Shown here: in pieces, positions 11,446-53,900 of the stretch
How the letters are laid out: each line of letters begins with the position of its first letter
Numbering within the stretch: position 1 is the first letter of the stretch
DNA from: Tubulanus polymorphus
Lineage: Eukaryota; Animalia; Nemertea
Reading direction: 5' to 3'
NCBI RefSeq assembly: GCF_964204645.1
Contig: NC_134030.1
Coordinates: forward strand, 4,816,778-4,880,777
Length of the DNA: 64,000 nt
The notes under the pieces: generated by a model
What the model was told of the DNA's origin: nothing
Seen by the model: only the letters and a program-made list of their open reading frames with translations
Databases searched by the model: none
Program-made: the position numbers and the translations under genes

Positions 11446-11476
<31 letters not shown>

Positions 11477-31577: not shown

Positions 31578-32720
31578 ATGTAGCAAACGTTGTTTGGGTC
31601 GACTGGAAAATATGTCTAATACTCCGATAGATAGTGAACGAGTTATTCGAAACACAAGAAGCTGTGATATCGCATGTACACAAATATGCTAGTTTCGATT
31701 GTAGCGTTCTCGTCCAAAACCTTCAGAAAACATTGGCGAGCGAAAAAGAGCTGAATGTGAATTTTCGCTTAAACGTTTAGCCGCAGAATTTGATGTTATT
31801 CTAGTATCGACCAGGAATCTGCTGCGGTATGAAAGGTGTTTCACATGTCAGCACACTGTAATTTCTGTACGACAGAACCATATAATCATGACATCAGAAA
31901 CTTTGAAATAAATATATAGATACGAATAAAGAAACGGAAAATTACTCCATTCATTCAAACTTTCAAACCAAGGAAGCTTCATTCGGTCATCAGTGGCAAT
32001 TTCAAATCGAGTTTCAATTTGAGGTTGAAAATGTCTCAGAGGGCTTTCAACGCAATAATGTGTATAATGTGTATAATGTTATGCATCGAGAAAGATATCG
32101 TTCATATGAGTTTTCAACAAGACCATTTAGAAAATTTAGTAAAAGAATCGAAAAATTGCTGCTCATTAAGATACACTTTTTCATAAATCTTGAAACGAAT
32201 CAAAGACACAGACCGATCATTCTGACACGATGACAAATTACAAAAAAATACAGAATATATTTTCGCTATGAAAGCAACATGGGAGCAGCATGTAGATAGA
32301 CCAAGTCCAAGTATGAATGAAATTCTGAAAACTATATTGTTCATCATACTGAGTGATTGAAACAAAAACACTGTTAAGTAATTATAATTCTCTCAGAATG
32401 TAGGCCTTACTACAAAAATTCACAATAATCATTGAAATTTCAATAAGTATCGACAAAATAGCACTCCGTCAAATTTTAAACTATGATGATGAAATCATAA
32501 ACTGGACCAAGCTCTAGGAAACCATTTCGACTTTCGGTAACTCCTATATTTTCGAAGCAAAATACATTTGCTTCTGGAGATCTTTTCAAAATCAATTACC
32601 CGAGCCTATTTAAATGAGATTTTTCTTATTGAAACATATAACTCAACTTTCGAGTGACCTAGTGTTCGGTGGTTAGACTTATCAAACTTGTGTTAATCAA
32701 ACATTTTAAAACAGATAGTA

Positions 32721-33220
32721 ATGCAGCCAAATATAAGCTTTATACGACCCTATTGGGTGAATTTCATCGAGTATTTTTCACGCAATCCGTCGAGCGAATT
32801 GAATCGGTTTCTGTTTCTTTACATTTATCCGATTGTTTTCATTTGCGGACTGACTGGAAACTCGCTGTCGCTGGTCTTAATGTTCGATCATCGATTTCGC
32901 CGTCATTCTTACAGCGCGTATATGGCGGTTTTGGCTATAAGTGACACTGTCTGTTTGGTCGGTTCTTTCATGGCTTCAATAAATCTAATTCCTACACTTT
33001 AAATGGTGGCGTTTTTATACGATTTACAGATGTCAACAAATGCCGTTTACCCGATCATGTATTCTATGCATCTAATTTAATAAGTTCTTGGATTATCATT
33101 TCGAAAACACTAGAAAGATGCTTCGCCGTTGTAAGCATGAATTATGCCGTAAAGTTCTACATATATTGTTTGATGGGAGCCGAATTCAGGAAAACGCTGA
33201 AACAGTGTTTTCGATCATGA
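32721..33220 (+). pseudogene. GPCR pseudogene (paralog of 34627-35574)
   Basis: Near-identical 5' part, a frameshift/stop near 33000, and a ~450-bp deletion of TM4-TM7 at ~33132. Retains the KTLKQCFRS* end. Confidence 0.85.
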
Positions 33221-34478
33221 AAAATATCTCATCGCATTGCACATACACGTATTATAATGGCCGATAAAAGCTATTGCTAAAACCTAAAACCAAACACAAA
33301 AATGCAGCCTGCAGCTAGAATACATTTTAGAGTACCATGTATCAACAAAACCCATTAGCAAGATTGCAAGTTTTAAAAATGAATACTGCGTCCATTTGAT
33401 CATCATGATGTCATTGTGGTATAGATAGTCACTACTTTTGGACAGTTCATCAAACTTTAGTAGTCAGTTTAATGGAAATAGTGTTGTACCTCGCACATTG
33501 ATAAGATGCACATTTTACGATTCTCAAAAACAATTGAAAAATAGATCATAACTCGTCATTTGATATCGCAGATACGGAAGCGATAAGCGATAAGGGGCCT
33601 CCAGTTGTCGCGAGCCAGCTCGACAAGTCGACATTTCGTGTGACATTTCGATGACAAATTATGTTTTGTTGACCATTTCCTTATTCCTCCTGCAAATAAA
33701 TGACGTTTTATATCTGATTTTCCTATAGGTATGCTAAAATCATTCATTTATTGGGCAAACTTTTAGTAAATCTGAGTTAATATCTAACCTAATTATCATA
33801 TTTAGATTGAAGATGATGTGCTTTATTTTTTCTTGTATAATATCTGCCTCAGATACATAAAACTTTCACAGAACAATGAACTTTTAATTGTCACTATGTC
33901 AACTATCCACATTGTTAACTCTAACTAACTTTTCAGCACTGGCCCCAGGTTTATATTTTTTATTTAAATGAGAAGAAGCATTTATATCGAATTGTTTCAT
34001 ATAAACTTCAAAAATAATTCTATAACATTCTCTCTGGGGATCATAGCTATTATGAATAAAAATTGCTTTATCGAAATTTTTTAATCTATAATTTGTTGCA
34101 TTTCTCCAGTAATTATCAAATTTTTACCCACTCCTATAGAAGTTCTGGTATGGAATGATTCTTTTTTCTTGACACCTTGCTTACTTTAAAAAATTTACAT
34201 AATCTAACATTTTAGCACTTTTTAAAGGTTTTTTTCAATTCTTTACTATTTCCTTCAACCTTTCTACATCTGGCGTGAAAACCTATTTATACCAATACTA
34301 TTAACTTATGGCAATTTGGGAGCTGTCTTGACTTATCTTTAATATTATTCCCCAATAACTTTGCAAATATACTGTCGCAGTATATTTCCTAGAGTATACT
34401 TTGTTCTATTTTAGTTTATCCGTGAAATTTGCCTCAAAGATCATACAACGGGCAATCTGATTGGTGCCGGTTAAACCT

Positions 34479-34560
34479 GCGCACCCAGTCTAGTGTGGCA
34501 GGGTCTTGCGCCGTGGCTGAGTGTAGCGACGCCATCGAAGTTCGAATCGCTGCCGGGGAG
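34479..34560 (+). other. GC-rich tRNA-like/Pol III-box element ~70 bp upstream of the GPCR ATG (copies at ~42866-42947 and ~44468-44549)
   Basis: A-box-like CAGTCTAGTGTGG or TGGCTGAGTGT, B-box GTTCGAATC at 34540, GGCAG...CTGCC complementarity, and an inverted CCAAT (CTGATTGG) just upstream. Confidence 0.4.
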
Positions 34561-34626
34561 GATGTCGGTGGTTAGACTTGTAGTATACATGGACCAAGTT
34601 AACAAAAGATTTTAAAATAGATAGTA

Positions 34627-35574
34627 ATGCAGCCAAATATAAGCTTTATACGTCCCCATTGGGTGAATTTCATCGAGTATTTTTCACGCAATCCGTCGAG
34701 CGAATTGAATCGGTTTCTGTTTCTTTACATTTATCCGATTGTTTTCATTTGCGGACTGACTGGAAACTCGCTGTCGCTGGTCTTAATGTTCGATCATCGA
34801 TTTCGCCGTCATTCTTACAGCGCGTATATGGCGGTTTTGGCTATAAGTGACACTGTCTGTTTGGTCGGTACTTTCATGGCTTCAATAAATCTAATTGCCT
34901 ACTCTTTAACTGGTAACGTTATTATACGATTTACAAATGTCAACATATGCCGTTTACCCGAACATGTATTCTACGCATCTAATTTAATAAGTTCTTGGAT
35001 TATCGTTTCGATAACACTAGAAAGATGCTTCGCCGTTGTCAGTCCCTTCACTGCCAGAATATTCTGTTCTCGAAAAGTAGCATGGATTATAACGGCTTCG
35101 GTTGTATCACTTTCATTCGCGTTCACTTCTTACGCGGCCGCAATTACCTCGTACGACAGTGAATTCGGTTGCTTCATATCATCATTACGCGGAATGAAGG
35201 CGCACTACGCGATCGCCCCGTCCAGTTTCATCTATTCACCGATATGTATCATAGCCTTACTAAACATCATCATAATCAGATCTTTAACGACGTCGCCGTC
35301 GTTAATACAAAGTAATAAAACAAAAATTCACTCGAATAATACCAGGAAAATAACTTTCACCGTTCTCATTGTGTCGATAACGTTTATAATTCTGCTCACT
35401 CCATCGGCCAGTCTTTGTATTCTTGTGGCGGCTTTACCGAATACACCAGACTTTGCAAACTGGTTAGATACGGCGCAATTCATCTTTAGCATAAATTGTG
35501 CCGTGAATTTTTACATATATTGTTTGACGGGAGCCGAATTCAGGAAAACGCTGAAACGGTGTTTTCGATCATGA
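34627..35574 (+). CDS. Intronless class A orphan GPCR (peptide-receptor/chemoreceptor-like), unit 1
   Basis: GLTGN (TM1), YMAVLAISD (TM2), ITLERCFAVVSP, W in TM4, LLTP (TM6) and AVNFYIYC (TM7). Confidence 0.9.
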   Translation: MQPNISFIRPHWVNFIEYFSRNPSSELNRFLFLYIYPIVFICGLTGNSLSLVLMFDHRFRRHSYSAYMAVLAISDTVCLVGTFMASINLIAYSLTGNVIIRFTNVNICRLPEHVFYASNLISSWIIVSITLERCFAVVSPFTARIFCSRKVAWIITASVVSLSFAFTSYAAAITSYDSEFGCFISSLRGMKAHYAIAPSSFIYSPICIIALLNIIIIRSLTTSPSLIQSNKTKIHSNNTRKITFTVLIVSITFIILLTPSASLCILVAALPNTPDFANWLDTAQFIFSINCAVNFYIYCLTGAEFRKTLKRCFRS

Positions 35575-36758
35575 AAAGTACCCCATCTAATCACACATAT
35601 TATACATGTATTATAATGGCTGATAAAAGCATTTGCTAAAACCTAATACATGTACCAAGCACATAATAACAGCCTGCAGCTGGAATACAAGTATTGTGTA
35701 TCAATATAAATCCATTAGAAACAGACGCATTTTAAGTTTTAAGATTGCAAGATTTAAAAAAAAATACTGCGTATGATTCATGATGGATGTCGAACTAATA
35801 GTCAATACTTTTTGGAAGTTCATCAACCTTTAGTCAGTTTAATGAAAATATTGTTGTACACCTCGCACAATACTAAGACGCACCTTTTATGATTTTCGAA
35901 AATAATTGAAAACATATCATAATTCATCATTTGATAACGAAGACAATGCACGACTTATAGCTGCTTTAATCACATCATGGGGCAGTGTAGTAGACCAAGT
36001 AGAAATCAAGTTCCGGGAAATATCGTTCAATATCTGAGTGAATCATCAGGTTGCTGAATTCATATTCAAAAATGTTTTGCTTCCTGAAGACTATATAATA
36101 CATGACTGTTGGGTTTGGAAGGGACACCAAATTAAGTCAAATCAAATTAAATTCGCCAATCAAATAAATAAGAAGGAACATCAAGATGAAGAACGTATAC
36201 GAAAGAAGAAAGTAGCTATAATCTATATGTGCTAATTAGACAGGAGTGGACTGACCGAAGAACCAAATACTCATATTCAGAAACCAAATTCCACAGCCGT
36301 GAGTTAGAGTTATCTCTGAACTCGGGAGTTGGGCTGGGGGCTGTGTTTTTAAGTGATATGGGTCACCATATTTTTACCATACCGAAAGCATATTCAGTAT
36401 CGTCTGGAAGAAAGGCAGAGCACAATTTCACAAATTTTCAATGTCAATAGAATAAAGATATGGTGACCTTATTATGAAAATTCTAAATGGAGTGATTAAG
36501 GTCACCATATTTCTCTATTTTATTGGCGTTAAAAATTAGTAAAGCTTTGCTCTCTTCAAGACTGACAGACCCTATTGAAATTGGCGATAACATCATAACC
36601 AAAAGTATATTTACCGGGTTCTTATCGCCCAAATCAAACAATAAAGTTCACCATATTTTAATAAAAAATTAACTTGGCAATGAAATAACCAGAAGCATAT
36701 ATACGATACATTTTTTCTCACTGCGATTAAAGCCGGGCGGGACGCCAGACATGACAAG

Positions 36759-37484
36759 ATGTCTAGTGACACAATACGCAAAGAACTTTTGGAAACCGTT
36801 CGAAAACTTGTTGGTGAATATCAAAACACCATCATCGAATCGGGAGGTCAGGCTGAGTTAACATTCTGTGGTAAGAAATTCGTCACTTTCAACGATGTAT
36901 GTTTTACTGAAGGTTACGATGACATAGCGCTAAATTTACCAGATGAAACATGCAAAGATGCGAGGGTTCTAGAAATCGGATGCGGAAATGGTTGTGTGAG
37001 CACCATGCATTATCTGCAAAACAAATCCAAGATCAGTTTCATTCTAGCGGTGGATATTAATCCACAAGCTCTAGAAAATACTAAAGCGAATTTCGAGCGT
37101 TACGGAGTTCCGGGGGAGGTGCGCTATTCAGACGTGTTCCAGGCGATTTCTGAAGATGAAAAGTTCGATTTGGTTTTTTGGAATGCTCCATTCTTCAACC
37201 ATACCCCCACCGAGACCGGTGACCTGAAGATTGTCGAAAGAGGATTCATGGATCCCGGTTACGAGGGCATCGGTAGATTCATCGCAGGTGCGCGTAAATA
37301 TCTGAGACCCGGTGGAAATGCGCTTTTTGGTTTTAGTAGCACTTGTGGTCAAATTGACATCCTGGAAGAAAAGGCGAAAGAAGCAGAAATGCGCCTCGAA
37401 CGTTTTTGGCATAAAACACTGGTCGTGGAAGCATTTGTCGTAGATTGGGAATTATGGCGAATTCTACCGATTGATACCGAGTAA
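36759..37484 (+). CDS. Intronless class I SAM-dependent methyltransferase, HemK/PrmC/MTS-like, type A (NAPF), copy 1
   Basis: Motif I VLEIGCGNG, DINPQALENTKAN, SDVF, FDLVFWNAPF (NPPY-equivalent) and YLRPGG. Confidence 0.9.
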   Translation: MSSDTIRKELLETVRKLVGEYQNTIIESGGQAELTFCGKKFVTFNDVCFTEGYDDIALNLPDETCKDARVLEIGCGNGCVSTMHYLQNKSKISFILAVDINPQALENTKANFERYGVPGEVRYSDVFQAISEDEKFDLVFWNAPFFNHTPTETGDLKIVERGFMDPGYEGIGRFIAGARKYLRPGGNALFGFSSTCGQIDILEEKAKEAEMRLERFWHKTLVVEAFVVDWELWRILPIDTE

Positions 37485-38983
37485 GAAACCGAAGTGTAAA
37501 TGTACCATTTAGTCAAATAACCCGCTTGAAAAAGCTATTTAGTTGCAATATAGAATATGAAATATTTCAAACTGTTGTATGACTGCATCGTGGCCAATAA
37601 GGTACATAGTCACATGAATAGGTTTCATTGTACTAACAATAGTCCAGTCTAGGATTTATGATCGCTTTTGGATTAAAGTTATGACTGTGCAACTGAGAGA
37701 CTTACGTACCGGTACCTATGTATATTTTACAAAAACAATCAAGGGTTTGTGGTCTCGCGGCCTATTAGTTTCCTGATGAGATATTCAAATTAACCTTATT
37801 TATTCTTAATAATATATCATATTATTCATTGGCAATATATGTGTTATTTTTCTGCAAGGCGCCAATTAACTTTCAATTCAGTTTTCTCGTTATAATGAGG
37901 GTCACGATCCATGGTGCATGACAATGAACAGTCCTGATGATGTCGACCTCTGTGTACCATCATTCACTACTTGACCGCCGAAACAACAAGGAAACCTTTT
38001 TTAGAGATACATCGTTCGTTTGTTTATTTGTTGACTGAGATAGAACATAATGTATTTATACGTATATTCATATGTACAAGATTCCCCCGACAATATAAAT
38101 TTACAATCCAATAAATCTAATAATAATAATCATTATATGATAATAATAATGATTATAATAATAAAGAATTCACAAAAAGATGATGAGTGCACGTAACCAA
38201 CAAATGTTACGAAAAAAAACCTACTTCTTACAACACTCGTAAAATAAAATTTATCTCTACAAATAAATTAAGTTATTTCCCCATAATATCTAAAATGCAC
38301 TTAGCCATATCAGTGAATATGTTTTACCACATTCAAAATGTACGCAAATACTTCTTGATCCTTTTGATATATGCGTGCCAAAACAGTTTTCAATTACTTT
38401 GAAGCACAGGATAAGACATTACCTTTCAAAAGCGAAATTCTAATTCAGAAATAAGTTAAATACTACCAAATCAGCCACAGTTCGGGAAATGGGGTGAGAG
38501 CGATGTTGAGAAAAATATACACATCCATCGCAATTCTGAACTCAAACTACATTCAATGAAATGTAGTCCACTCGCGATAATCTTATGCCGTTGTATTACA
38601 TAAAGCACCAAGAGCAATTTTCACAGAATCTCTATACATCATTATATCTAATAATCTATTCGTCAGAACCGTTCGCACTTAGTTAACTAGTAATCAAAAT
38701 ATTACCTAATTCGATATTAAACCAGATCTCTTTTTTTTATTTTTGATTACGCTTCATTTTTTCAAATCTTTATAAGAAGATATAATATAATTTACATAAA
38801 CGGTGTAGAAACACTATTATCATTACGTTGCTCAGGCATTTCAACATATATACGTATCAAGTTTTTATGTAGGGTTGATCGTTCACGCATCTAAAAATAT
38901 TCCTATAAAATTACAGTAGAGTACTCCATTCATCAAAAAGTCGAGAATTTCATCGTAAGAAAAATCAAAATTAATAGTGAATT

Positions 38984-39316
38984 ATGAATAGTGAATTATT
39001 AGAAAATGTAATAGAAAATCCATTAATAATAAACCCGAAATTTAATGAAATGAATATATTAGATTATCGGTGGTACAGAAAAACATTTATAGATTATTTC
39101 TCGAGTCATGATAAAGAGGACATATTGAAAAAGTTAGATAACTTTAAACCAAAAATAACTTATGCAATGAACTTATTTGAACTTAAATATGATGATTTAA
39201 GAGAATTTTTAAATAAACATCCATCAAGAAATGAAATCGAAAATTATATTCCAAAAATATTTTCAAGAGCTGCGAATACTAAATATAAACTCCCACGTGG
39301 CGAGGCTTATTTCTGA
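38984..39316 (+). other. Very AT-rich 110-codon ORF fragment of foreign-looking composition at the inner duplication junction (copy at 48981-49313)
   Basis: N/K/I/E-rich with almost exclusively A/T-ending codons. Begins at a short duplication aatagtgaatt and is absent from the equivalent MT-B flanks. Confidence 0.35.
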
Positions 39317-39548
39317 AGGGGGTCTGGGGGCCCTCCCCTAGAAAGATTTTGAAAATTCAATCGCCGGAGATGCGTTTTGGGGCCATTTCACGGTCTCATT
39401 CACAGAAGCATGAGAAGCCGCGAGCCAACCACCTAGTCAGAGAACGACGAGCTGCTACGCGGTACAGCGTGCTTTTGAAAAAAAATTTGTTAAGCAAAAA
39501 AGTGGGGCGGCTTTGGCCGCCCCTGCCGCCCCTGTTCCGACGGCCCTG
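39317..39548 (-). mobile_element. Partial hAT-like MITE (copy at 49314-49546)
   Basis: GGGGGTCTGGGGGCCCTCCCC core and terminus GCCGCCCCTGTTCCGACGGCCCTG (reverse complement CAGGGCCGTCGGAAC). Confidence 0.55.
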
Positions 39549-40204
39549 ACTGGTGCTATGGCAACGCTGGCAACAGGTGTTCTTTTATACATCAAAAAAC
39601 GTCAGTTACAATTCGTCCTGAACAAGATATACGTAACAAGAATAACACGGTTTTTTTCATTTACCAAGGGTTAGTCGTTTGTATTAGTACACGAGCAACT
39701 TTTATTAACGAATATTTAAAGCTTCCATTTGACTATTTCAAAATATGCATGTCAAAAATAGAGCACTTAGTTTTTACCCTGAGTTGGTTTCCATACACCT
39801 CCTTTCCTGTCTGGATGGGCGACCCTCAGTCCTTGCTCCAAGTCATCATCAGCTTTTCTAAATGTTTTCCATAAGTCCCTACCGCCTGGAATGGAAAGAA
39901 TGGAAAAAATGAATGAATGAAATATGTCAACAGGATAAGAACCAACGCAAGTTTTTGCTACGTGTGAGATTTGTGAAGCCAATATTTCCACCACCCCAAC
40001 TAGTTCTGATTGACCTCATTTCTTTTATTAATGATACACTCGAGAAACGTGAAATCCCTTCTCGCCGGTGAGATCATCGGCTGATGTCGGAGTTATAGCT
40101 GCTGTTACACATAAATTATTGAATGAATATAAAAATTCCTAATAATACGATAATTTTTAATTCTGACTGCGATTAAAGCCGGGCGGGACGCCAGACGTGA
40201 CAAG

Positions 40205-40930
40205 ATGTCTAGTGATACAACACGCAAACAACTTTTGGAAACCGTTCGAAAACTTGTTGGTGAATATCAAAACACGATCATCGAATCGGGAGGTCAGGCT
40301 GAGTTCACATTCTGTGGTAAGAAATTCGTCACTTTCACCGATGTATGTTTTACTGAAGGTTACGATGACATAGCGCTAAATTTACCAGATGAAACACGCA
40401 AAGATGCGAGGGTTCTAGAAATCGGATGCGGAAATGGTTGTGTGAGCACCATACATTATCTGCAAAACAAATCCAAGATCAGTTTCATTCTAGCGATGGA
40501 TATCAATCCACAAGCTTTAGAAAATACTAAAGCGAATTTCGAGCGTTACGGAGTTCCAGGGGAGGTGCGCTATTCAGACGTGTTCCAGTCGATTTCTGAA
40601 GATGAAAAGTTCGATTTGATTTTCTGGAATGTTCCATTCTTTAACCAGACCCCCACCGAGACCGGTGACCTGAAGATTGTCGAAAGAGGATTCATCGATC
40701 CCGGTTACGAGGGCATCGGTAGATTCATCGCAGGTGCGCGTAGATATCTGAGACCCGGTGGAAATGCGTTTTTTGGTTTTAGTAGCGCTTGTGGTCAAAT
40801 TGACATCCTGGAAGAAAAGGCGAAAGAAGCAGAAATGCGCCTCGAACGTTTTTGGCATAAAACACTGGTCGTGGAAACATTTGTCGTAGATTGGGAATTA
40901 TGGCTAATTCTAAAGATTGATACCGAATAA
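40205..40930 (+). CDS. HemK-like methyltransferase, type B (NVPF), copy 2
   Basis: Same motifs; 241 aa, intact. Confidence 0.9.
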   Translation: MSSDTTRKQLLETVRKLVGEYQNTIIESGGQAEFTFCGKKFVTFTDVCFTEGYDDIALNLPDETRKDARVLEIGCGNGCVSTIHYLQNKSKISFILAMDINPQALENTKANFERYGVPGEVRYSDVFQSISEDEKFDLIFWNVPFFNQTPTETGDLKIVERGFIDPGYEGIGRFIAGARRYLRPGGNAFFGFSSACGQIDILEEKAKEAEMRLERFWHKTLVVETFVVDWELWLILKIDTE

Positions 40931-43013
40931 GAAACCGAAGTCAAAATGTACCAAATAACCCGCATGAAAAACAACATCTAGTTGCAATATAGAATATGAA
41001 ATATTTAAACTGTTGTATGACTTCATCGTGGCCAATAAGGCACACAGTCACATGAATAGGTTTCATTGTACTAACAATAGTCCAGTCTAGGATTTGTGAT
41101 CGCTTTTGGATTAAAGTTATGACTGTGCAACTGAGAGACTTACGTACCGGTACCTATGTATATTTTACAAAAACAATCAAGGGTTTGTGGTCTCGCGGCC
41201 TATTAGTTTCCTGATGAAATATTCAAATTATTTTTATTGATTCTTAATAATATATCATATTATTCATTGGCAATATATGTGTTATTTTTTACAAGGCGCC
41301 AATTAACTTTCGATTTAGTTTTCTCGTTATAATGAGGGTCACGATCCATGGTGCATGACAATGAACAGTCCTGATGACGTCGACCTCTGTGTACCATCAT
41401 TCACTACTTGACCGCCGAAACAACAAGGAAACCTTTTTTAGAGATACATCGTTCGTTTGTTTATTTGTTGACTGAGATAGAACATAATGTATTTATACGT
41501 ATATTAATATGTACAAGATTCACCCGACAATATAAATTTACAATCAAATAAATCTAATAATAATAATTATTATATAATAATAATAATAATGATAATAATA
41601 ATAAAGAATTCACAAAAAGATGATGAGTGCACGTAACCAACAAATGTTACGAATAAAAACCTACTTCTTACAACACTCGCAAAATAAAATTTATCTCTAC
41701 AAATAAATTAAGTTATTTCCCCATAATATCTAAAATGCACTTAGCCATATCAGTGAATATGTTTTACCACATTCAAAATGTACGCAAATACTTCTTGATC
41801 CTTTTGATATATGCGTGCCAAAATAGTTTTCAATTACTTTGAAGCACAGGATAAGACATTACCTTTCAAAAGCGAAATTCTAATTCAGAAATAAGTTAAA
41901 TACTACCAAATCAGCCACAGTTCGGGAAATGGGGTGAGAGCGATGTTGAGAAAAATATACACATCCATCGCAATTCTGAACTCAAACTACATTCAATGAA
42001 ATGTAGTCCACTCGCGATAATCTTATGCCGTTGTATTACATAAAGCACCAAGAGCAATTTTCACAGAATCTCTATACATCATTATATCTAATAATCTATT
42101 CATCAGAACCGTTTGCACTTAGTTAACTAGTAATCAAAATATTACCTAATTCGATTTTAAACCAGATCTCTTTTTTTTCATTTTTGATTACGCTTCATTT
42201 TTTCAAATCTTTATAAGAAGATATAATATAGTTTACATATACGGTGTAGAAACACTATTATCATTACGTTGCTCAGGCATTTCAACATATATACGTATCA
42301 AGTTTTTATGTAGGGTTGATCGTTCACGCATCCAAAAATATTCCTATAAAATTACAGTAGAGTACTTCATTCATCAAAAAGTCGAGAATTTCATCGTAAG
42401 AAAAATCAAAATAAATAGTGAATTATACATTATGATATTATTTTCTGTCTAGAAAATTATTCGGTACAAAAATTACGCGACTTAAATTATGTTCATCATT
42501 TTCTTATTTTTAAACAGCCACCATTATGTAAAATCTAACTTTGAGCAAAATGCAAAAGTGTATCAACAAAACCCGAAAGCAACGGAGACGTTTTAGATTT
42601 TAAGATTGCAAGATTTAAAAATGAATACTGCGTTCATTTGATCATCATGATGTCATTGTGGTATGAAATAGTCACTACTTATGGACAGTTCATCAAACTT
42701 TAGTAGTCAGTTCAATGGAAATAGTGTTGTACCTCGCACATTGATAAGATGCACATTTTACGATTCTCAAAAACAATTGAAAAATAGATCATAACTCGTC
42801 ATTTGATATCGAAACTTGCCTCAGAGATCATACAACAGGAAATCTGATTGGTGCCGGTTAAACCTGCGCACCCAGTCTAGTGTGGCAGGGTCTTGCGCCG
42901 TGGCTGAGTGTAGCGATGCCATCGAAGTTCGAATCGCTGCCGAGGAGGATGTCGGTGGTTAGACTTGTAGTATACATGGACCAAGTTAACAAAAGATTTT
43001 AAAACAGATAGTA

Positions 43014-43193: not shown

Positions 43194-44615
43194 AAAATAT
43201 CTCATCGCATTGCACATACACGTAATATAATGGTCGATAAAAACCTATTGCTAAAACCTAAAACCAATCACAAAAATACAGCCTGCAGCTAGAATACATT
43301 TTAGAGTACCATGTATCAACAAAACCCATTAGCAACGGACACGTTTTAGGTTTTAAGATTGCAAGATTTAAAAATAAATACTGCGTCCATTTGATGTCAT
43401 TGTGGTATGAAATAGTCACTACTTTTGGACAGTTCATCAAACTTTAGTAGTCAGTTTAATGGAAATAGTGTTGTACCTCGCACATTGATAAGATGCACAT
43501 TTTACGATTCTCAAAAACAATTGAAAAATAGATCATAACTCGTCATTTGATATCGAAGATACGGAAGCGATTATCGATAAGGGGCCTCCAGTTGTCGCGA
43601 GCCAGCTCGACAAGTCGACATTTCGTGTGACATTTGGATGACAAATTATGTTTTGTTGACCATTTCATTATTCCTCCTGCAAATAAATGACGTTTTATAT
43701 CTGATTTTCCTATAGGTATGCTGAAATCATTCATTTATTGGGCAAACTTTTAGTAAATCTGAGTTAATATCTAACCTAATTATCATATTTAGATTGAAGA
43801 TGATGTGCTTTATTTTTTCTTGTATAATATCTGCCTCAGATACATAAAACTTTCACAGAACAATGAACTTTTAATTGTCACTATGTCAACTATCCACATG
43901 GTAAACTCTAACCAACTTTTGAGCACTGGCCCCAGGATTATATTTTTTATTTGAATGAGTAGAAGCATTTATATCGAATTGTTTCATATAAACTTCAAAA
44001 ATAATTCTATAACATTCTCTCTGGGGATCATAGCTATTATGAATAAAAATTGCTTTATCGAATTTTTTTTTAATCTATAATTTGTTGCATTTCTCCAGTA
44101 ATTATCAAATTTTTACCTACTCCTATAGAAATTTTGGTATTGAATGATTCTTTTTTCTTGACACCTTGCTTACTTAAAAAAATGTACATAATCTAACATT
44201 TTAGCACTTTTTAAAGGTTTTTTTCAATTCTTTACTATTTCCTTCAACCTTTCTACATCTGGCGTGAAAACCTATTTATACCAATACTATTAACTTATGG
44301 CAATTTGGGAGCTGTCTTGACTTATCTTTAATATTATTCCCCAATAACTTTGCAAATATACTGTCGCAGTATATTTCCTAGAGTATACTTTGTTCTATTT
44401 TAGTTTATCCGTGAAATTTGCCTCAAAGATCATACAACGGGCAATCTGATTGGTGCCGGTTAAACCTGCGCACCCAGTCTAGTGTGGCAGGGTCTTGCGC
44501 CGTGGCTGAGTGTAGCGACGCCATCGAAGTTCGAATCGCTGCCGGGGAGGATGTCGGTGGTTAGACTTGTAGTATACATGGACCAAGTTAACAAAAGATT
44601 TTAAAATAGATAGTA

Positions 44616-45563
44616 ATGCAGCCAAATATAAGCTTTATACGTCCCCATTGGGTGAATTTCATCGAGTATTTTTCACGCAATCCGTCGAGCGAATTGAATC
44701 GGTTTCTGTTTCTTTACATTTATCCGATTGTTTTCATTTGCGGACTGACTGGAAACTCGCTGTCGCTGGTCTTAATGTTCGATCATCGATTTCGCCGTCA
44801 TTCTTACAGTGCGTATATGGCGGTTTTGGCTATAAGTGACACTGTCTGTTTGGTCGGTACTTTCATGGCTTCAATAAATCTAATTGCCTACTCTTTAACT
44901 GGTGACGTTATTATACGATTTACAGATGTCAACAAATGCCGTTTACCCGAACATGTATTCTATGCATCTAATTTAATAAGTTCTTGGATTATCGTTTCGA
45001 TAACACTAGAAAGATGCTTCGCCGTTGTCAGTCCCTTCACTGCCAGAATATTCTGTTCTCGAAAAGTAGCATGGATTATTACGGCTTCGGTTGTATCATT
45101 TTCATTCGCATTCACTTCTTACGCGGCCGCAATTACCTCGTACGACAGTGAATTCGGTTGCTTCATATCATCATTACGCGGAATGAAGGCGCACTACGCG
45201 ATCGCCCCGTCCAGTTTCATCTATTCACCGATATGTATCATAGCCTTACTGAACATCATCATAATCAGATCTTTAACGACGTCGCCGTCGTTAATACAAA
45301 GTAATAAAACAAAACTTCACTCGAATAATACCAGGAAAATAACTTTCACCGTTCTCATTGTGTCGATAACGTTTATAATTCTGCTCACTCCATCGGCCAG
45401 TCTTTGTATTCTTGTGGCGGCTTTACCGAATACACCAGACTTTGCAAACTGGTTAGATACGGCGCAATTCATCTTTAGCATAAATTGTGCCGTGAATTTT
45501 TACATATATTGTTTGACGGGAGCCGAATTCAGGAAAACGCTGAAACAGTGTTTTCGATCATGA
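44616..45563 (+). CDS. Intronless class A orphan GPCR, unit 2
   Basis: 315 aa; differs from the unit 1 copy at 6 residues. Confidence 0.9.
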   Translation: MQPNISFIRPHWVNFIEYFSRNPSSELNRFLFLYIYPIVFICGLTGNSLSLVLMFDHRFRRHSYSAYMAVLAISDTVCLVGTFMASINLIAYSLTGDVIIRFTDVNKCRLPEHVFYASNLISSWIIVSITLERCFAVVSPFTARIFCSRKVAWIITASVVSFSFAFTSYAAAITSYDSEFGCFISSLRGMKAHYAIAPSSFIYSPICIIALLNIIIIRSLTTSPSLIQSNKTKLHSNNTRKITFTVLIVSITFIILLTPSASLCILVAALPNTPDFANWLDTAQFIFSINCAVNFYIYCLTGAEFRKTLKQCFRS

Positions 45564-46748
45564 ATAGTACCCCATCTAATCACACATATTATACATGTAT
45601 TATAATGGCTGATAAAAGCATTTGCTAAAACCTAATACATGTACCAAGCACATAATAACAGCCTGCAGCTGGAATACAAGTATTGTGTATCAATATAAAT
45701 CCATTAGAAACAGACGCATTTTAAGTTTTAAGATTGCAAGATTTAAAAAAAAAATACTGCGTATGATTCATGATGGATGTCGAACTAATAGTCAATACTT
45801 TTTGGAAGTTAATCAACCTTTAGTCAGTTTAATGAAAATATTGTTGTACACCTCGCACAATACTAAGACGCACCTTTTATGATTTTCGAAAATAATTGAA
45901 AACATATCATAATTCATCATTTGATAACGAAGACAATGCACGACTTATAGCTGCTTTAATCACATCATGGGGCAGTGTAGTAGACCAAGTAGAAATCAAG
46001 TTCCGGGAAATATCGTTCAATATCTGAGTGAATCATCAGGTTGCTGAATTCATATTCAAAAATGTTTTGCTTCCTGACGACTATATAATACATGACTGTT
46101 GGGTTTGGAAGGGACACCAAATTAAGTCAAATCAAATTAAATTCGCCAATCAAATAAATAAGAAGGAACATCAAGATGAAGAACGTATACGAAAGAAGAA
46201 AGTAGCTATAATCTATATGTGCTAATTAGACAGGAGTGGACTGACCGAAGAACCAAATACTCATATTCAGAAACCAAATTCCACAGCCGTGAGTTAGAGT
46301 TATCTCTGAACTCGGGAGTTGGGCTGGGGGCTGTGTTTTTAAGTGATTCGGGTCACCATATTTTTACCATACCGAAAGCATATTCAGTATCGTCTGGAAG
46401 AAAGGCAGAGCACAATTTCACAAATTTTCAATGTCAATAGAATAAAGATATGGTGACCTTATTATGAAAATTCTGAATGGAGTGATTAAGGTCACCATAT
46501 TTCTCTATTTTATTGGCGTTAAAAATTAGTAAAGCTGTGCTCTCTTCCAGACTGACAGACCCTATTGAAATTGGCGATAACATCATAACCAAAAGTATAT
46601 TTACCGGGTTCTTATCGCCCAAATCAAACATTAAAGTTCACCATATTTTCATAAAAAATTAACTTGGCAATGAAATAACCAGAAGCATATATACGATACA
46701 TTTTTTCTCACTGCGATTAAAGCCGGGCGGGACGCCAGACGTGACAAG

Positions 46749-47474
46749 ATGTCTAGTGACACAATACGCAAAGAACTTTTGGAAACCGCTCGAAAACTTG
46801 TTGGTGAATATCAAAACACGATCATCGAATCGGGAGGTCAGGCTGAGTTCACATTCTGTGGTAAGAAATTCGTCACTTTCAACGATGTATGTTTTACTGA
46901 AGGTTACGATGACATAGCGCTAAATTTACCAGATGAAACACGCAAAGATGCGAGGGTTCTAGAAATCGGATGCGGAAATGGTTGTGTGAGCACCATGCAT
47001 TATCTGCAAAACAAATCCAAGATCAGTTTCATTCTAGCGGTGGATATCAATCCACAAGCTTTAGAAAATACTAAAGCGAATTTCGAGCGTTACGGAGTTC
47101 CGGGGGAGGTGCGCTATTCAGACGTGTTCCAGGCGATTTCTGAAGATGAAAAGTTCGATTTGGTTTTTTGGAATGCTCCATTCTTCAACCATACCCCCAC
47201 CGAGACCGGTGACCTGAAGATTGTCGAAAGAGGATTCATCGATCCCGGTTATGAGGGCATCGGTAGATTCATCGCAGGTGCGCGTAAATATCTGAGACCC
47301 GGTGGAAATGCGCTTTTTGGTTTTAGTAGCACTTGTGGTCAAATTGACATCCTGGAAGAAAAGGCGAAAGAAGCAGAAATGTGCCTCGAACGTTTTTGGC
47401 ATAAAACACTGGTCGTGGAAGCATTTGTCGTAGATTGGGAATTATGGCGAATTCTACCGATTGATACCGAGTAA
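46749..47474 (+). CDS. HemK-like methyltransferase, type A (NAPF), copy 3
   Basis: Same motifs; 241 aa, intact. Confidence 0.9.
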   Translation: MSSDTIRKELLETARKLVGEYQNTIIESGGQAEFTFCGKKFVTFNDVCFTEGYDDIALNLPDETRKDARVLEIGCGNGCVSTMHYLQNKSKISFILAVDINPQALENTKANFERYGVPGEVRYSDVFQAISEDEKFDLVFWNAPFFNHTPTETGDLKIVERGFIDPGYEGIGRFIAGARKYLRPGGNALFGFSSTCGQIDILEEKAKEAEMCLERFWHKTLVVEAFVVDWELWRILPIDTE

Positions 47475-50203
47475 GAAACCGAAGTGTAAATGTACCATTT
47501 AGTCAAATAACCCGCTTGAAAAAGCTATTTAGTTGCAATATAGAATATGAAATATTTCAAACTGTTGTATGACTGCATCGTGGCCAATAAGGTACATAGT
47601 CACATGAATAGGTTTCATTGTACTAACAATAGTCCAGTCTAGGATTTATGATCGCTTTTGGATTAAAGTTATGACTGTGCAACTGAGAGACTTACGTACC
47701 GGTACCTATGTATATTTTACAAAAACAATCAAGGGTTTGTGGTCTCGCGGCCTATTAGTTTCCTGATGAAATATTCAAATTAACCTTATTGATTCTTAAT
47801 AATATATCATATTATTCATTGGCAATATATGTGTTATTTTTCTTCAAGGCGCCAATTAACTTTCAATTCAGTTTTCTCGTTATAATGAGGGTCACGATCC
47901 ATGGTGCATGACAATGAACAGTCCTGATGATGTCGACCTCTGTGTACCATCATTCACTACTTGACCGCCGAAACAACAAGGAAACCTTTTTTAGAGATAC
48001 ATCGTTCGTTTGTTTATTTGTTGACTGAGATAGAACATAATGTATTTATACGTATATTAATATGTACAAGATTCACCCGACAATATAAATTTACAATCCA
48101 ATAAATCTAATAATAATAATTATTATATAATAATAATAATAATAATGATAATAATAATAAAGAATTCACAAAAAGATGATGAGTGCACGTAACCAACAAA
48201 TGTTACGAATAAAAACCTACTTCTTACAACACTCGCAAAATAAAATTTATCTCTACAAATAAATTAAGTTATTTCCCCATAATATCTAAAATGCACTTAG
48301 CAATATCAGTGAATATGTTTTACCACATTCAAAATGTACGCAAATACTTCTTGATCCTTTTGATATATGCGTGCCAAAACAGTTTTCAATTACTTTGAAG
48401 CACAGGATAAGACATTACCTTTCAAAAGCGAAATTCTAATTCAGAAATAAGTTAAATACTACCAAATCAGCCACAGTTCGGGAAATGGGTTGAGAGCGAT
48501 GTTGAGAAAAATATACACATCCATCGCAATTCTGAACTCAAACTACATTCAATGAAATGTAGTCCACTCGCGATAATCTTATGCCGTTGTATTACATAAA
48601 GCACCAAGAGCAATTTTCACAGAATCTCTATACATCATTATATCTAATAATCTATTCGTCAGAACCGTTCGCAGTTAGTTAACTAGTAATCAAAATATTA
48701 CCTAATTCGATATTAAACCAGATCTCTTTTTTTTCATTTTTGATTACGCTTCATTTTTTCAAATCTTTATAAGAAGATATAATATAGTTTACATATACGG
48801 TGTAGAAACACTATTATCATTACGTTGCTCAGGCATTTCAACATATATACGTATCAAGTTTTTATGTAGGGTTGATCGTTCACGCATCCAAAAATATTCC
48901 TATAAAATTACAGTAGAGTACTCCATTCATCAAAAAGTCGAGAATTTCATCGTAAGAAAAATCAAAATTAATAGTGAATTGTGAATAGTGAATTATTAGA
49001 AAATGTAATAGAAAATCCATTAATAATAAACCCGAAATTTAATGAAATGAATATATTAGATTATCGGTGGTATAGAAAAACATTTATAGATTATTTCTCG
49101 AGTCATGATAAAGGGGACATATTGAAAAAGTTAGATAACTTTAAACCAAAAATAACTTATGCAATGAACTTATTTGAACTTAAATATGATGATTTAAGAG
49201 AATTTTTAAATAAACATCCATCAAGAAATGAAATCGAAAATTATATTCCAAAAATATTTTCAAGAGCTGCGTATACTAAATATAAACTCCCACGTGGCGA
49301 GGCTTATTTCTGAAGGGGGTCTGGGGGCCCTCCCCTAGAATGATTTTGAAAATTCAATCGCCGGAGATGCGTTTTGGGGCCATTTCACGGTCTCATTCAC
49401 AGAAGCATGAGAAGCCGCGAGCCAACCACCTAGTCAGAGAACGACGAGCTGCTACGCGGTACAGCGTGCTTTTGAAAAAAAAATTTGTTAAGCAAAAAAG
49501 TGGGGCGGCTTTGGCCGCCCCTGCCGCCCCTGTTCCGACGGCCCTGACTGGTGCTATGGCAACGCTGGCAACAGGTGTTCTTTTATACATCAAAACAACG
49601 TCAGTTACAATTCGTCCTGAACAAGATATCCGTAACAAGAATAACACGGTTTTTTTCATTTACCAAGGGTTAGTCGTTTGTATTAGTACACGAGCAACTT
49701 TTATTAACGAATATTTAAAGCTTCCATTTGACTATTTCAAAATATGCATGTCAAAAATAGAGCACTTAGTTTTTACCCTGAGTTGGTTTCCATACACCTC
49801 CTTTCCTGTCTGGGTGGGCGACCCTCAGTCCTTGCTTCAAGTCATCATCAACTTTTCTAAATGTTTTCCATAAGTCCCTACCGCCGGGAATGGAAAGAAT
49901 GGAAAAAATGAATGAATGAAATATGTCAACAGGATAAGAACCAACGCAAGTTTTTGCTACGTGTGAGATTTGTGAAGCCAATATTTCCACCACCCCAACT
50001 AGTTCTGATTGACCTCATTTCTTTTATTAATGATACACTCGAGAAACGTGAAATCCCTTCTCGCCGGTGAGATCATCGGCTGATGTCGGAGTTATAGCTG
50101 CTGTTACACATAAATTATTGAATGAATATAAAAATTCCTAATAATACGATAATTTTTAATTCTGACTGCGATTAAAGCCGGGTGGGACGCCAGACGTGAC
50201 AAG

Positions 50204-50929
50204 ATGTCTAGTGACACAACACGCAAACAACTTTTGGAAACCGTTCGAAAACTTGTTGGTGAATATCAAAACACGATCATCGAATCGGGAGGTCAGGCTG
50301 AGTTAACATTCTGTGGTAAGAAATTCGTCACTTTCACCGATGTATGTTTTACTGAAGGTTACGATGATGTAGCGCTAAATCTACCAGATGAAACCCGCAA
50401 AGATGCGAGGGTTCTAGAAATCGGATGCGGAAATGGTTGTGTGAGCACCATACATTATCTGCAAAACAAATCCAAGATCAGTTTCATTCTAGCGGTGGAT
50501 ATCAATCCACAAGCTTTAGAAAATACTAAAGCGAATTTCGAGCGTTACGGAGTTTCGGGGGAGGTGCGCTATTCAGACGTGTTCCAGTCGATTTCTGAAG
50601 ATAAAAAGTTCGATTTGGTTTTCTGGAATGTTCCATTCTTTAACCAGACCCCCACCGAGACCGGTGACCTGAAGATTGTCGAAAGAGGATTCATCGATCC
50701 CGGTTACGAGGGCATCGGTAGATTCATCGCAGGTGCGCGTAGATATCTGAGACCCGGTGGAAATGCGTTTTTTTGTTTCAGTAGCGCTTGTGGTCAAATT
50801 GACATCCTGGAAGAAAAGGCGAAAGAAGCAGAAATGCGCCTCGAACGTTTTTGGCATAAAACACTGGTCGTGGAAACATTTGTCGTAGATTGGGAATTAT
50901 GGCGAATTCTACCGATTGATACCGAATAA
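50204..50929 (+). CDS. HemK-like methyltransferase, type B (NVPF), copy 4
   Basis: Same motifs; 241 aa, intact. Confidence 0.9.
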   Translation: MSSDTTRKQLLETVRKLVGEYQNTIIESGGQAELTFCGKKFVTFTDVCFTEGYDDVALNLPDETRKDARVLEIGCGNGCVSTIHYLQNKSKISFILAVDINPQALENTKANFERYGVSGEVRYSDVFQSISEDKKFDLVFWNVPFFNQTPTETGDLKIVERGFIDPGYEGIGRFIAGARRYLRPGGNAFFCFSSACGQIDILEEKAKEAEMRLERFWHKTLVVETFVVDWELWRILPIDTE

Positions 50930-53900
50930 GAAACCGAAGTCAAAATGTACCAAATAACCCGCTTGAAAAACAACATTTAGTTGCAATATAGAATATGAAA
51001 TATTTCAAACTGTTGTATGACTTCATCGTGGCCAATAAGGTACACAGTCACATGAATAGGTTTCATTGTACTAACAATAGACCAGTCTAGGATTTATGCT
51101 TCATCGCTTTTGGATTAAAGTTATGACTGTGCAACTGAGAGACTTACGTACCGGTACCTATGTATATTTTACAAAAACAATCAAGGGTTTGTGGTCTCGC
51201 GGCCTATTAGTTTCCTGATGAAATATTCAAATTAACCTTATTGATTCTTAATAATATATCATATTATTCATTGGCAATATATGTGTTATTTTTCTTCAAG
51301 GCGCCAATTAACTTTCAATTCAGTTTTCTCGTTATAATGAGGGTCACGATCCATGGTGCATGACAATGAACAGTCCTGATGACGTAGACCTCTGTGTACC
51401 ATCATTCACTTCTTGAACGCCGAAACAACAAGGAAACCTTTTTTAGAGATACATCGTTCGTTTGTTTATTTGTTGACTGAGATAGAACATAATGTATTTA
51501 TACGTATATTAATATGTACAAGATTCACCCGACAATATAAATTTACAATCCAATAAATCTAATAATAATAATTATTATATAATAATAATAATAATAATGA
51601 TAATAATAATAAAGAATTCACAAAAAGATGATGAGTGCACGTAACCAACAAATGTTACGAATAAAAACCTACTTCTTACAACACTCGCAAAATAAAATTT
51701 ATCTCTACAAATAAATTAAGTTATTTCCCCATAATATCTAAAATGCACTTAGCAATATCAGTGAATATGTTTTACCACATTCAAAATGTACGCAAATACT
51801 TCTTGATCCTTTTGATATATGCGTGCCAAAACAGTTTTCAATTACTTTGAAGCACAGGATAAGACATTACCTTTCAAAAGCGAAATTCTAATTCAGAAAT
51901 AAGTTAAATACTACCAAATCAGTCACAGTTCGGGAAATTGGGTGAGAGCGATGTTGAGAAAAATATACACATCCATCGCAATTCAAAACTCAAACTACAT
52001 TCAATGAAATGTAGTCCACTCGCGATAATCTTATGCCGTTGTATTACATAAAGCACCAAGAGCAATTTTCACAGAATCTCTATACATCATTATATCTAAT
52101 AATCTATTCATCAGAACCGTTCGCAGTTAGTTAACTAGTAATCAAAATATTACCTAATTCGATTTTTAACCAGATCTCTTTTTTTTCATTTTTGATTACG
52201 CTTCATTTTTTCAAATCTTTATAAGAAGATATAATATAGTTTACATATACGGTGTAGAAACACTATTATCATTACGTTGCTCAGGCATTTCAACATATAT
52301 ACGTATCAAGTTTTTATGTAGGGTTGATCGTTCACGCATCCAAAAATATTCCTATAAAATTACAGTAGAGTGCTTCATTCATCAAAAAGTCGAGAATTTC
52401 ATCGTAAGAAAAATCAAAATAAATAGTGAATTATACATTATGATATTATTTTCTGTCTAGAAAATCATTCGGTACAAAAATTACGCGACTTAAATTATGT
52501 TCATCATTTTCTTATTTTCAAACAGCCACCATTATGTAAAATCTAACACTGAGCAAAATGCAAAAGTTGACACATGTAATCAATTACTACTATTACAAAA
52601 TAAATCTCAAAATGCAATATCGAATTCTGTTTGTTCTCGTAGAGAATGAAAATTAAGTTTCGTTTGACTGTTGCTATTATGTGTGTGCCAGTTCAACTAA
52701 TTGCTTTCAATCCTATGAAACCATAAAATGCGAAAGATTTTCATGTTTGTTTTTCCTCATAATCTTTCCTTAAAGCATTGATTTTGTTTGATGTTGCAAA
52801 TTTGATCATTCACTTGTTTGGTATTTAGGTATGAAACATGTTGTGGTATTCAAATAAACTATGAACAGTAGACTCTGCTTGCCACTGATCTCACAGGATC
52901 AAGGAATTCTCTCGCGAGGTATCAACTCCGGGTTTGACCGAGTCTTCTATATTAGGAATTCTCGGATGAATAAAATTTGTTACCTCAATCGCATTCAATA
53001 CTTCAAATTGAGGAATTTTCACAGATGATTCGAATTTGAATAAGTAGGTCATAGATGGCAATACAATATATTCTAATCTTTTTTTCAACATGATATCTGC
53101 CAAAATATACAATACAGAAATCAATTACTGGCACCGGAAGAATGAAGAATAGCGAATCCTTCGTTGTACATTTTCATGTACCGCGCGTAAAAAAAATCTA
53201 TGCACGTTTCAAATTAAGATATACATTTATTTAAACACAATAGTAAATTCGAAGTATCTTTTTATCATTGAAGTACGTAAGTATATTATGCCAGTTTCAC
53301 ACGCACACAAACTGTACAAAGATATATTCATAGAGAAATTCATGAGATTTCGTTCCTGTCTTCGCTTCATTCGTTTTCAATTTGTTAATTACAGTTGCAA
53401 TGTTTTGTGCACATCTGAATGCTCGCACTGCTAAGAGAGCCAGGCGTAATAATGAATGTAGGTGTCATAAGTTGTGAGTTCACATTCTAAACAACAACAA
53501 TAACAGAGCAATACGGCAATGATACCGAAATACTTTTTGAAATATTTCTTCAAGCGACTGAAAGCCAAAAGCAGACATACTACGTGTGCATGATTGGAAA
53601 TTTCAACTTTTAATCTACAAGTTTATGACTAAAACGTCAACTTGCAGAGTGTCAAATAAATTGTTGTTTCACGTGAACATCATTCTTACACCTCTTAGCA
53701 TCTATAGACAGTAAAACATGCGTCTATAATCATCCCCCATCATTCATAGATGGAAAGAGTATCAACTGTAATTTATTCAATAGCAGTTTTTTAAACTATA
53801 TACAATCTATATATTGTCATAGCGACGAATTAAACAAGAATACATACAACTTAGCGCGAAATCAATAGCATAGCGCTGCCACTGGTAGCCATAGCAACCC

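Follow-up and report, generated by a model that had tools for sequence, protein, structure and literature searches.

An intron-free, prokaryote-type family of MTS-fold methyltransferases, probably long resident and lineage-expanded in the ribbon worm Tubulanus polymorphus

The described enzymes that come closest to the genes reported here are N-methyltransferases of three kinds. HemK2/MTQ2/N6AMT1 (KMT9) and PrmC/HemK are class I enzymes with a Rossmann-type fold and a motif IV of the N/D-P-P-Y/F type. RsmC, RlmG, and MJ0882, the founders of the Pfam family MTS, methylate guanine-N2 in ribosomal RNA. The third kind comes from natural-product pathways and includes the Asc-Orf2 carbamoyl N-methyltransferase and the gentamicin and apramycin methyltransferases. 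Here, we describe genes of this type in a window of 64,000 nucleotides on chromosome 6 of the palaeonemertean ribbon worm Tubulanus polymorphus (positions 4816778-4880777 of a 23-Mb contig). Translation of the window gives four intact open reading frames (ORFs) for a methyltransferase (MT) of 241 amino acids (aa) and two for a 315-aa G protein-coupled receptor (GPCR), all of them on the plus strand. The best overall explanation, which we consider probable, is that the MTs belong to a lineage-expanded, intron-free family of prokaryote-type, MTS-fold N-methyltransferases that depend on S-adenosylmethionine (SAM) and have long been resident in T. polymorphus, with the GPCR as a passenger.

The worm proteins share their length with a set of uncharacterised small MTS methyltransferases of prokaryotes (~220-250 aa), with which they align nearly in full at 27-40% identity. 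Both have an N-terminal helix followed by a hairpin, motifs I-IV including FWNxPF, and a DPGY motif. They differ in their setting, as the prokaryotic genes lie in operon-like contexts, next to DegT aminotransferase or Vut_1 genes, whereas the worm genes stand by themselves and have multiplied to about 25 copies. HemK2 and PrmC are matched well in fold (Z 20-21); however, the worm MTs stay under the cut-offs of the corresponding models (TIGR00537, TIGR03534, and TIGR00536), carry NxPF in motif IV, and exist as many paralogs rather than as one ortholog. Compared to PrmC, the worm MT model is also without the N-terminal release-factor-binding domain. RsmC, RlmG, and MJ0882 provide the best sequence match among solved structures and share with the worm MTs the hairpin and a "VF" segment before motif I, as well as an NPPF-like motif IV. 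In contrast to RsmC, which is built of two tandem domains (343 aa), the worm MTs are single-domain proteins that reach 45 bits against an RsmC cut-off of 295. Among the natural-product enzymes, Asc-Orf2 (9l4q) is the top fold match, while the gentamicin methyltransferase (5u0t and related entries) and the apramycin N-methyltransferase (23lq) are found by profile at E values of 5e-13 to 5e-8. Nevertheless, these natural-product enzymes are only 17-19% identical to the worm MT, and the gentamicin enzyme is larger (~310-320 aa). Actinomycete relatives of the worm MT do occur in what look like amino-sugar-type clusters, whereas the worm genes have no conserved biosynthetic partners.

A search of the whole assembly returned about 25 MT copies on nine chromosomes, all open frames without internal stops and found at 47-100% identity, together with approximately nine fragments. 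All these paralogs are intronless, each being a single uninterrupted ORF. Eight of them form a cluster on contig 8 (14.66-14.69 Mb). A fifth close relative of the window copies (92%) lies inverted 9 kb upstream of the window and is identical to a T. polymorphus RefSeq protein; the nearest database proteins are likewise RefSeq entries of this species, named "release factor glutamine methyltransferase-like." For older paralogs, the ratio of nonsynonymous to synonymous divergence (dN/dS) lies at 0.15-0.42, or at 0.16-0.42 over the pairs whose dS (0.09-1.2) can be measured, deeper pairs being saturated. Among the recent copies in the window it ranges from 0.34 to 0.82, on only 9-34 differences, with a value of 0.65 for MT-B1 versus MT-A1. 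The proteins align with their prokaryotic homologs from end to end (residues 8-241). Because of this alignment, the strong family matches, and dN/dS below 1, the ORFs can be read as real genes and not as chance frames. The ratios also indicate that the ~25 paralogs are under purifying selection. The first-pass annotation of the window had pointed to a repeated amplification of a receptor-methyltransferase cassette. The amplification is real, but it is not special to the cassette: intact paralogs are spread over nine chromosomes, with synonymous divergence from 0.03 to saturation, and this distribution marks the amplification of the MTs as genome-wide and old.

The assignment to class I SAM-dependent methyltransferases, also proposed in the first-pass annotation, is borne out by several lines of evidence. 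The Pfam model MTS (PF05175) matches the MTs at 55.5 and 54.4 bits, against a gathering cut-off of 23 (E 7e-15 and 1.5e-14). The translations contain LEIGCGNG at residues 71-78 (motif I, GxGxG), the acidic residue D99 after strand 2, and N142-A/V-P144-F145 as motif IV, which has the form (N/D)-x-P-(Y/F). Little or no variation is seen at these columns between worm, eukaryote-like, and prokaryotic members, and E72, G74, G76, G78, D99, N107, N111, and P144 are invariant. The predicted SAM-binding site and the nitrogen-acceptor motif are intact. The AlphaFold2 model of MT-A1, with a predicted local distance difference test score (pLDDT) of 91.7, consists of a long N-terminal helix, a hairpin, and a Rossmann-type core in which strands and helices alternate. 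In fold comparisons, the model matched many solved class I methyltransferases with a Rossmann-like seven-strand fold (Z 15-21.6). The N-methyltransferases among them gave Z scores of 21.6 (Asc-Orf2, 9l4q), 20.4-21.1 (N6AMT1/HemK2), 20.3 (PrmC), 19.1 (RsmC), and 18.7 (MJ0882). Foldseek found Asc-Orf2 at E 1e-13 and also listed gentamicin methyltransferase entries. When the family profile was compared with solved structures, RsmC (2pjd) came out at E 1e-14, MJ0882 (1dus) at 8e-13, and HemK at ~1e-10. Two further chains, one of an N-methyltransferase from apramycin biosynthesis and one deposited as a release factor glutamine methyltransferase, were matched at 5e-13, the gentamicin methyltransferase at 5e-8, and human N6AMT1 only at 8e-6.

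Motif IV reads FWNAPF in the A copies and FWNVPF in the B copies, as the first-pass annotation had noted. The annotation counted this departure from the canonical NPPY against a housekeeping HemK ortholog. The departure is no local novelty: FWNxPF is common to the prokaryotic relatives and hence a trait of the family. Outside the window, the motif is more varied, with FWHxPY in most copies on contigs 8, 3, and 5, FWCVPC in one paralog, and NFPF also seen.

An exhaustive, profile-free search of 1.84 billion representatives yielded 3,217 relatives, only four of them at E <= 1e-30. The closest relatives outside Tubulanus are 34-44% identical and intronless, and those of their contigs that were inspected appeared eukaryote-like, with sparse short ORFs, reverse-transcriptase fragments, a CAND1 exon, and a coding GC content well above that of the flanks. 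The CAND1 (TIP120) exon is 69% identical to that of the worm, and a reverse transcriptase of the long interspersed nuclear element (LINE) type 49%; on these comparisons, a very close relative of Tubulanus is ruled out as the carrier of that contig. Two of the matches without a name in the database lie in plainly bacterial gene neighbourhoods. The named matches from two profile searches are all bacterial or archaeal (27-40% identity over nearly the full length), except for Tubulanus and Actinia tenebrosa. The prokaryotes include Patescibacteria, DPANN archaea, Bdellovibrionota, many actinomycetes, rhizobia, and Xenorhabdus/Photorhabdus. The gene of A. tenebrosa (LOC116292570, scaffold WAHB01000226.1, L114:6001-6762) is a single exon for 253 aa with the motif FWSFPF; its product is 36% identical in the core and sits on a long branch in the trees. 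A separate observation concerns the ENA "metagenome" assembly ERZ25069859 (loci L031, L112, and L113, contigs up to 597 kb), in which a eukaryote has at least five intronless paralogs carrying the motif FWNPPW. These form a clade of their own with a support of 100 in the Shimodaira-Hasegawa-like approximate likelihood ratio test (SH-aLRT), an expansion independent of that in the worm.

Trees were built by IQ-TREE quick search with SH-aLRT support. The Tubulanus paralogs are monophyletic (98-100), and together with 14 intronless genes, of which those checked lie on eukaryote-like contigs, they form a clade (97-98) with the prokaryotes on the other side. When the tree was rooted on Escherichia coli RsmC and PrmC, the eukaryote clade fell inside a prokaryote-dominated family, beside a few myxobacterial, rhizobial, and archaeal sequences (86). 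We consider, with moderate confidence and on the basis of these sequence comparisons, that the most likely history is an old transfer from a prokaryote into an animal lineage, followed by independent expansions in several hosts. Several points weigh against this view. The node on which the nesting depends has a support of only 86, the base of the ingroup is a polytomy, the search was a quick one, and very long branches lead to the outgroups. A constrained tree in which every eukaryote row, the Actinia gene among them, fell into one clade was not rejected and scored even slightly better (approximately unbiased test, p-AU 0.58). In addition, animals are poorly covered in the protein database, which contains only three of the ~25 Tubulanus paralogs, and little can thus be concluded from the absence of other animals.

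The main rival to a transfer is an ancient eukaryotic or metazoan MT family that descended vertically and was lost in most lineages. We judge it unlikely, although it is the alternative that survives best. It would agree with the single, well-supported clade of eukaryote-borne sequences and with the test just mentioned, which leaves room for the Actinia gene in that clade. Furthermore, the composition of the genes is fully host-like, synonymous sites are saturated in deep paralogs, and the atlas look-alikes include fungal clusters. Against vertical descent, the named carriers are only Tubulanus and one sea anemone, compared to a wide spread in bacteria and archaea; moreover, the eukaryotic copies seen all consist of one uninterrupted ORF, and the eukaryote clade lies within prokaryotic diversity in the outgroup-rooted tree. 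The GC content at third codon positions (GC3) is 0.41-0.42 in the MT genes and 0.42-0.44 in the coding sequences of the GPCR, ATP-grasp, and sulfotransferase genes nearby; because the MTs do not differ from host genes in this respect, any transfer must be old. Of the first-pass description of the MTs as bacterial-looking and horizontally acquired, the first part stands, as the genes are intronless and their named relatives outside a small eukaryote-borne clade are prokaryotic, while the acquisition itself remains a likelihood.

The features of the locus are collected in Table 1. The inventory given in the first-pass annotation (four intact MTs, two intact and two truncated GPCRs) was recovered by ORF calls and tblastn, and its order, a GPCR fragment, a GPCR, MT-A, and MT-B, twice in succession, is also seen in the ORF positions, tblastn matches, and self-alignment.

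Table 1. Features of the MT-GPCR locus, in window coordinates
Feature	Position	Strand	Description
GPCR fragment 1	32692..33572	+	internally deleted copy of the 315-aa GPCR
GPCR copy 1	34627..35574	+	315 aa, intact single-exon rhodopsin-type receptor
MT-A1	36759..37484	+	241 aa, intact, MTS-type; predicted SAM-dependent N-methyltransferase; motif IV FWNAPF
MT-B1	40205..40930	+	241 aa, intact; protein 93% identical to MT-A1; motif IV FWNVPF
GPCR fragment 2	42811..43171	+	GPCR upstream region and first 53 codons; at the junction of both large units
GPCR copy 2	44616..45563	+	315 aa, intact; 98% identical to copy 1
MT-A2	46749..47474	+	241 aa, intact; 98% identical to MT-A1; motif IV FWNAPF
MT-B2	50204..50929	+	241 aa, intact; motif IV FWNVPF
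Large duplicated unit, copy 1	33198..42559		GPCR + MT-A + MT-B; blastn self-comparison
Large duplicated unit, copy 2	43171..52567		GPCR + MT-A + MT-B; blastn self-comparison
3' region travelling with the MT	37514..39000	+	~1.5 kb, in all five chromosome 6 copies
A-to-B spacer	39001..40150		short dispersed host repeats, units of ~250 and ~290 bp
Context GPCR, Srw-like	30501..31655	-	384 aa, single exon, just outside the repeat; Pfam Srw E 9.5e-14, 7tm_1 E 2.6e-13

Self-alignment showed that the two large units are 98.07% identical over 9,398 bp. Nested within them is a 2.3-kb MT unit, which occurs twice in the first large unit at ~96% identity (36697-39000 versus 40142-42442) and is repeated likewise in the second. 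GPCR fragment 1 aligns by blastn in two stretches, 32692-33132 with 34598-35039 (95.7%) and 33134-33572 with 35488-35943 (78%), and by tblastn in three pieces at 32721-33217, which correspond to residues 1-90, 78-139, and 286-315. GPCR fragment 2 matches both 34424-34784 and 44413-44773 at 96%, with residues 1-53 found by tblastn at 43014-43172. The junction between the large units (42558-43171) is a mosaic of partial copies of the region upstream of the GPCR. A third, inverted copy made of a GPCR pseudogene and an MT lies upstream (chromosome 6, 4807137-4809976); here the GPCR has a stop codon while the MT is intact. Stepwise local duplication would account for the four copies in the window and the fifth, inverted copy upstream. 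In a first step, the 2.3-kb MT unit would have duplicated (~4% divergence), and in a second, a block of 9.4-10 kb (~2% divergence), carrying one member of the GPCR family along.

Alternatively, the second 10-kb unit could be an assembly artefact in which two haplotypes were placed in tandem, so that the true locus would contain one GPCR and two MTs. We regard this as improbable. The two units differ by only 1.9%, which falls within the range of heterozygosity of marine invertebrates. However, the mosaic junction offers no clean restart of the unit, the two GPCR fragments are structurally different, and the nested A and B copies together with the inverted copy upstream show that duplication does occur at this locus. 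Even under such an artefact, the conclusions at the level of the family would stand.

A search of the worm genome with the 3' region that travels with the MT gave matches only at the five chromosome 6 copies (97-100%). The A-to-B spacer, on the other hand, gave 551 first-look matches on all chromosomes at 85-96% identity. A transposon as carrier of the MTs was considered and rejected, as the 1.5 kb downstream of the MT is unique to the chromosome 6 copies and dispersed repeats are confined to the spacer. The spacer repeats themselves (~290 and ~253 bp) occur in hundreds of copies, 89-96% identical, that are spread across all chromosomes, and the two are probably elements resembling short interspersed nuclear elements (SINEs) or miniature inverted-repeat transposable elements (MITEs). 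The MTs lie on a 23-Mb contig, are flanked by exons for metazoan GPCR, fn3, and sulfotransferase proteins, and have host repeats in their spacers. Because the spacer is made of genome-wide host repeats and the GC3 is host-like, we conclude that the locus is an ordinary part of the host chromosome rather than contamination or a mobile element.

We then considered the link between the MTs and the GPCR. The 315-aa receptor matches Pfam 7tm_1 (E 3.5e-14) and Srsx (E 4e-10) and belongs to a large, single-exon family with 1,721 first-look candidate matches in the genome. Apart from the copies in this duplication, it has a single close relative, an 85% paralog on contig 2. Near that paralog no MT match was found, and no GPCR was found at 12 other MT loci within the 10-kb flank on the lower-coordinate side and 1.5 kb on each side. 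GPCR copies 1 and 2 differ at a dN/dS of 0.36 on 11 differences. Within the chromosome 6 blocks, the GPCR copies decay (two truncated, one with a stop codon), while every MT copy is intact. These observations are best explained by the GPCR being a passenger of segmental duplication in a GPCR-dense genome and not part of a functional module. With ~1,700 candidate GPCR matches in 268 Mb, it would be nothing unusual for one of about a dozen loci to lie next to a GPCR by chance; by our estimate, this is to be expected in about a third of cases.

In the first-pass annotation, the pair had been proposed to form an enzyme-plus-sensor module, in which the MT modifies a signal or ligand sensed by the adjacent GPCR and both were amplified because they work together. 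The same order and strand in all three chromosome 6 units, with the MT 1.2 kb downstream of the GPCR, would fit such a module. Yet the three pairs are copies of one recent duplication event and hence count as a single observation; the GPCR next to the intact upstream MT carries a stop codon, two of the four GPCR copies in the window are truncated, the 85% paralog on chromosome 2 has no MT match nearby, and the flanks read at the 12 other MT loci contain no GPCR. The linkage is confined to one recently duplicated neighbourhood of chromosome 6, and we consider the module very improbable.

Family membership was assessed with curated models. The HemK2/MTQ2/N6AMT1 model TIGR00537 gave 61.1 and 59.1 bits against a cut-off of 87, and 63.7 bits was the best score over all 25 genome copies. 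A genome search with the same model for a HemK2 of the worm returned only the MT family, a search by which a multi-exon ortholog would be missed. The scores were 50.1 bits for PrmC (TIGR03534, cut-off 199), 34.4 bits for the HemK family (TIGR00536, cut-off 115.5), and 44.8 bits for RsmC (NF007023, cut-off 295), whose two-domain architecture differs from the single domain of the 241-aa MTs. In the MT-A1 model, one helix and the hairpin precede the catalytic domain, in place of an N-terminal helical release-factor-binding domain, and motif IV of the window copies is NAPF or NVPF instead of NPPY. That the MTs are the housekeeping HemK2/N6AMT1 or HemK1 ortholog of the worm, acting on a release factor or histone, is hardly credible, as the RefSeq name, the presence of HemK2/N6AMT1 structures among the top fold matches, and the HemK2-type models as best NCBIfam rows are outweighed by scores under every curated cut-off (61 versus 87, 50 versus 199, and 34 versus 115), by a profile match to N6AMT1 (8e-6) weaker than that to RsmC (1e-14), by an NxPF motif, and by a number of divergent copies, ~25, that is uncharacteristic of such a gene. 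The first-pass annotation had come to the same view of a housekeeping HemK. Since the closest folds in the model comparison are all those of nitrogen methylators (Z 19-21.6), the name "HemK-like N-methyltransferase" appears fair for fold and chemistry, but not as a statement of membership in HemK1, HemK2, or RsmC.

The conserved motifs suggest how the enzymes would work. SAM would be held by motif I (LEIGCGxG), the acidic D99, and the SD-V-F motif, while N142-x-P144-F145 would place a nitrogen of the substrate, in an amino or amide group, so that it can receive the methyl group directly; HemK/PrmC, N6AMT1, RsmC, and the aminoglycoside N-methyltransferases work in this way. The predicted reaction, inferred from the model and its fold matches, is the transfer of a methyl group from SAM to an amino or amide nitrogen.

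Regarding the substrate, a small-molecule amine is a somewhat likelier candidate than protein or RNA, and we put this forward only tentatively. The hint comes from the actinomycete homologs, which follow aminotransferase genes, and from the profile match to the apramycin N-methyltransferase chain. The MT homolog stands directly after a close relative of the DegT/DnrJ/EryC1 aminotransferases (70-100% identical) in 17 loci of the actinomycetes Streptomyces, Kitasatospora, and Marinactinospora, and in four further loci a more distant relative lies nearby (loci L059-L102, for example, L093:4396-6495). The Marinactinospora locus adds genes for a nucleoside diphosphate (NDP)-sugar dehydratase, a GFO/IDH/MocA oxidoreductase, an acyltransferase, and an ATP-grasp protein. 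This neighbourhood looks like an uncharacterised amino-sugar-type cluster, and by analogy it suggests that a sugar-like small molecule is N-methylated at an amine that has just been formed. Such a reading is tempered by the fold matches to protein and RNA N-methyltransferases, which are as good as those to small-molecule enzymes. It is also tempered by the paralogs outside the window in which His or Cys replaces the asparagine of motif IV in an open frame (for example, L012:1495-2235, contig 8, 14.694 Mb); the chemistry may differ across the family, or activity may be lost in these members. Around the other MT paralogs of the worm, the ORFs in the flanks read gave no Pfam match, and no conserved neighbour or biosynthetic partner was found there. 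We also noted a Vut_1 (PF02592) transporter gene adjoining the MT homolog in four loci of Patescibacteria, DPANN, or Bacteroidota type (L014:8001-9491, L036:5881-7383, L038, and L107), the first of which has PTPS and GTP cyclohydrolase I genes close by.

In a more far-reaching scenario, an amine N-methyltransferase of prokaryotes would have been acquired by the worm, as well as by a few other marine invertebrates, and multiplied to serve a small-molecule chemistry of their own, for instance that of a defensive or signalling metabolite. On chromosome 6, the enzymes might then work with neighbouring intronless, bacterial-looking ATP-grasp ligases within 75 kb, as an animal-encoded biosynthetic gene neighbourhood. 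We think this scenario improbable.

The remaining part of the window contains other genes. A tandem array of intronless ATP-grasp_4 genes (404-411 aa) occupies 1347-2582 and 3500-4714 on the plus strand, with a fragment at 3-344, and continues upstream of the window (contig 6, positions 4795037-4798588). The proteins match their Pfam model at E 5e-10 and show only a weak likeness to D-Ala-D-Ala ligase models. The genome has ~12 such paralogs, and they come within 75 kb of MTs only on chromosome 6; by a rough estimate, judged post hoc, this proximity would arise by chance in ~2% of cases. A co-transfer of ATP-grasp and MT genes was rejected, as the other ATP-grasp paralogs of the worm are not near MTs and an ATP-grasp neighbour occurs in 1 of 80 prokaryotic loci. 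Between this array and the GPCR-MT block lies a large exon with a Sulfotransfer_2 domain (E 1e-33; 26670-27335, minus strand). Finally, a 541-aa ORF with a TTG start and without a Pfam match (9954-11579, plus strand) overlaps antisense ORFs. Of the whole window, only the part in which it lies is GC-rich (46.5% GC at 10001-12000), and this region may be repeat or of low complexity.

Seen as a whole, the MTs are probably an enzyme family of prokaryotic type that an animal has domesticated and expanded. To our knowledge, few gene transfers have been described in the phylum Nemertea, and a literature search returned nothing on nemertean gene transfer involving methyltransferases, on this MT family, or on Asc-Orf2. 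If the transfer is true, the MTs would be a clear example of how an enzyme family of prokaryotic type can be maintained by selection and reach ~25 copies in a nemertean, with parallel MT expansions in at least one other eukaryote. The pairing of GPCR and MT, for its part, is best seen as a side effect of segmental duplication in a genome rich in GPCRs, which corrects the view of a functional module. The family is uncharacterised in prokaryotes too, and finding its substrate would therefore annotate hundreds of genes.

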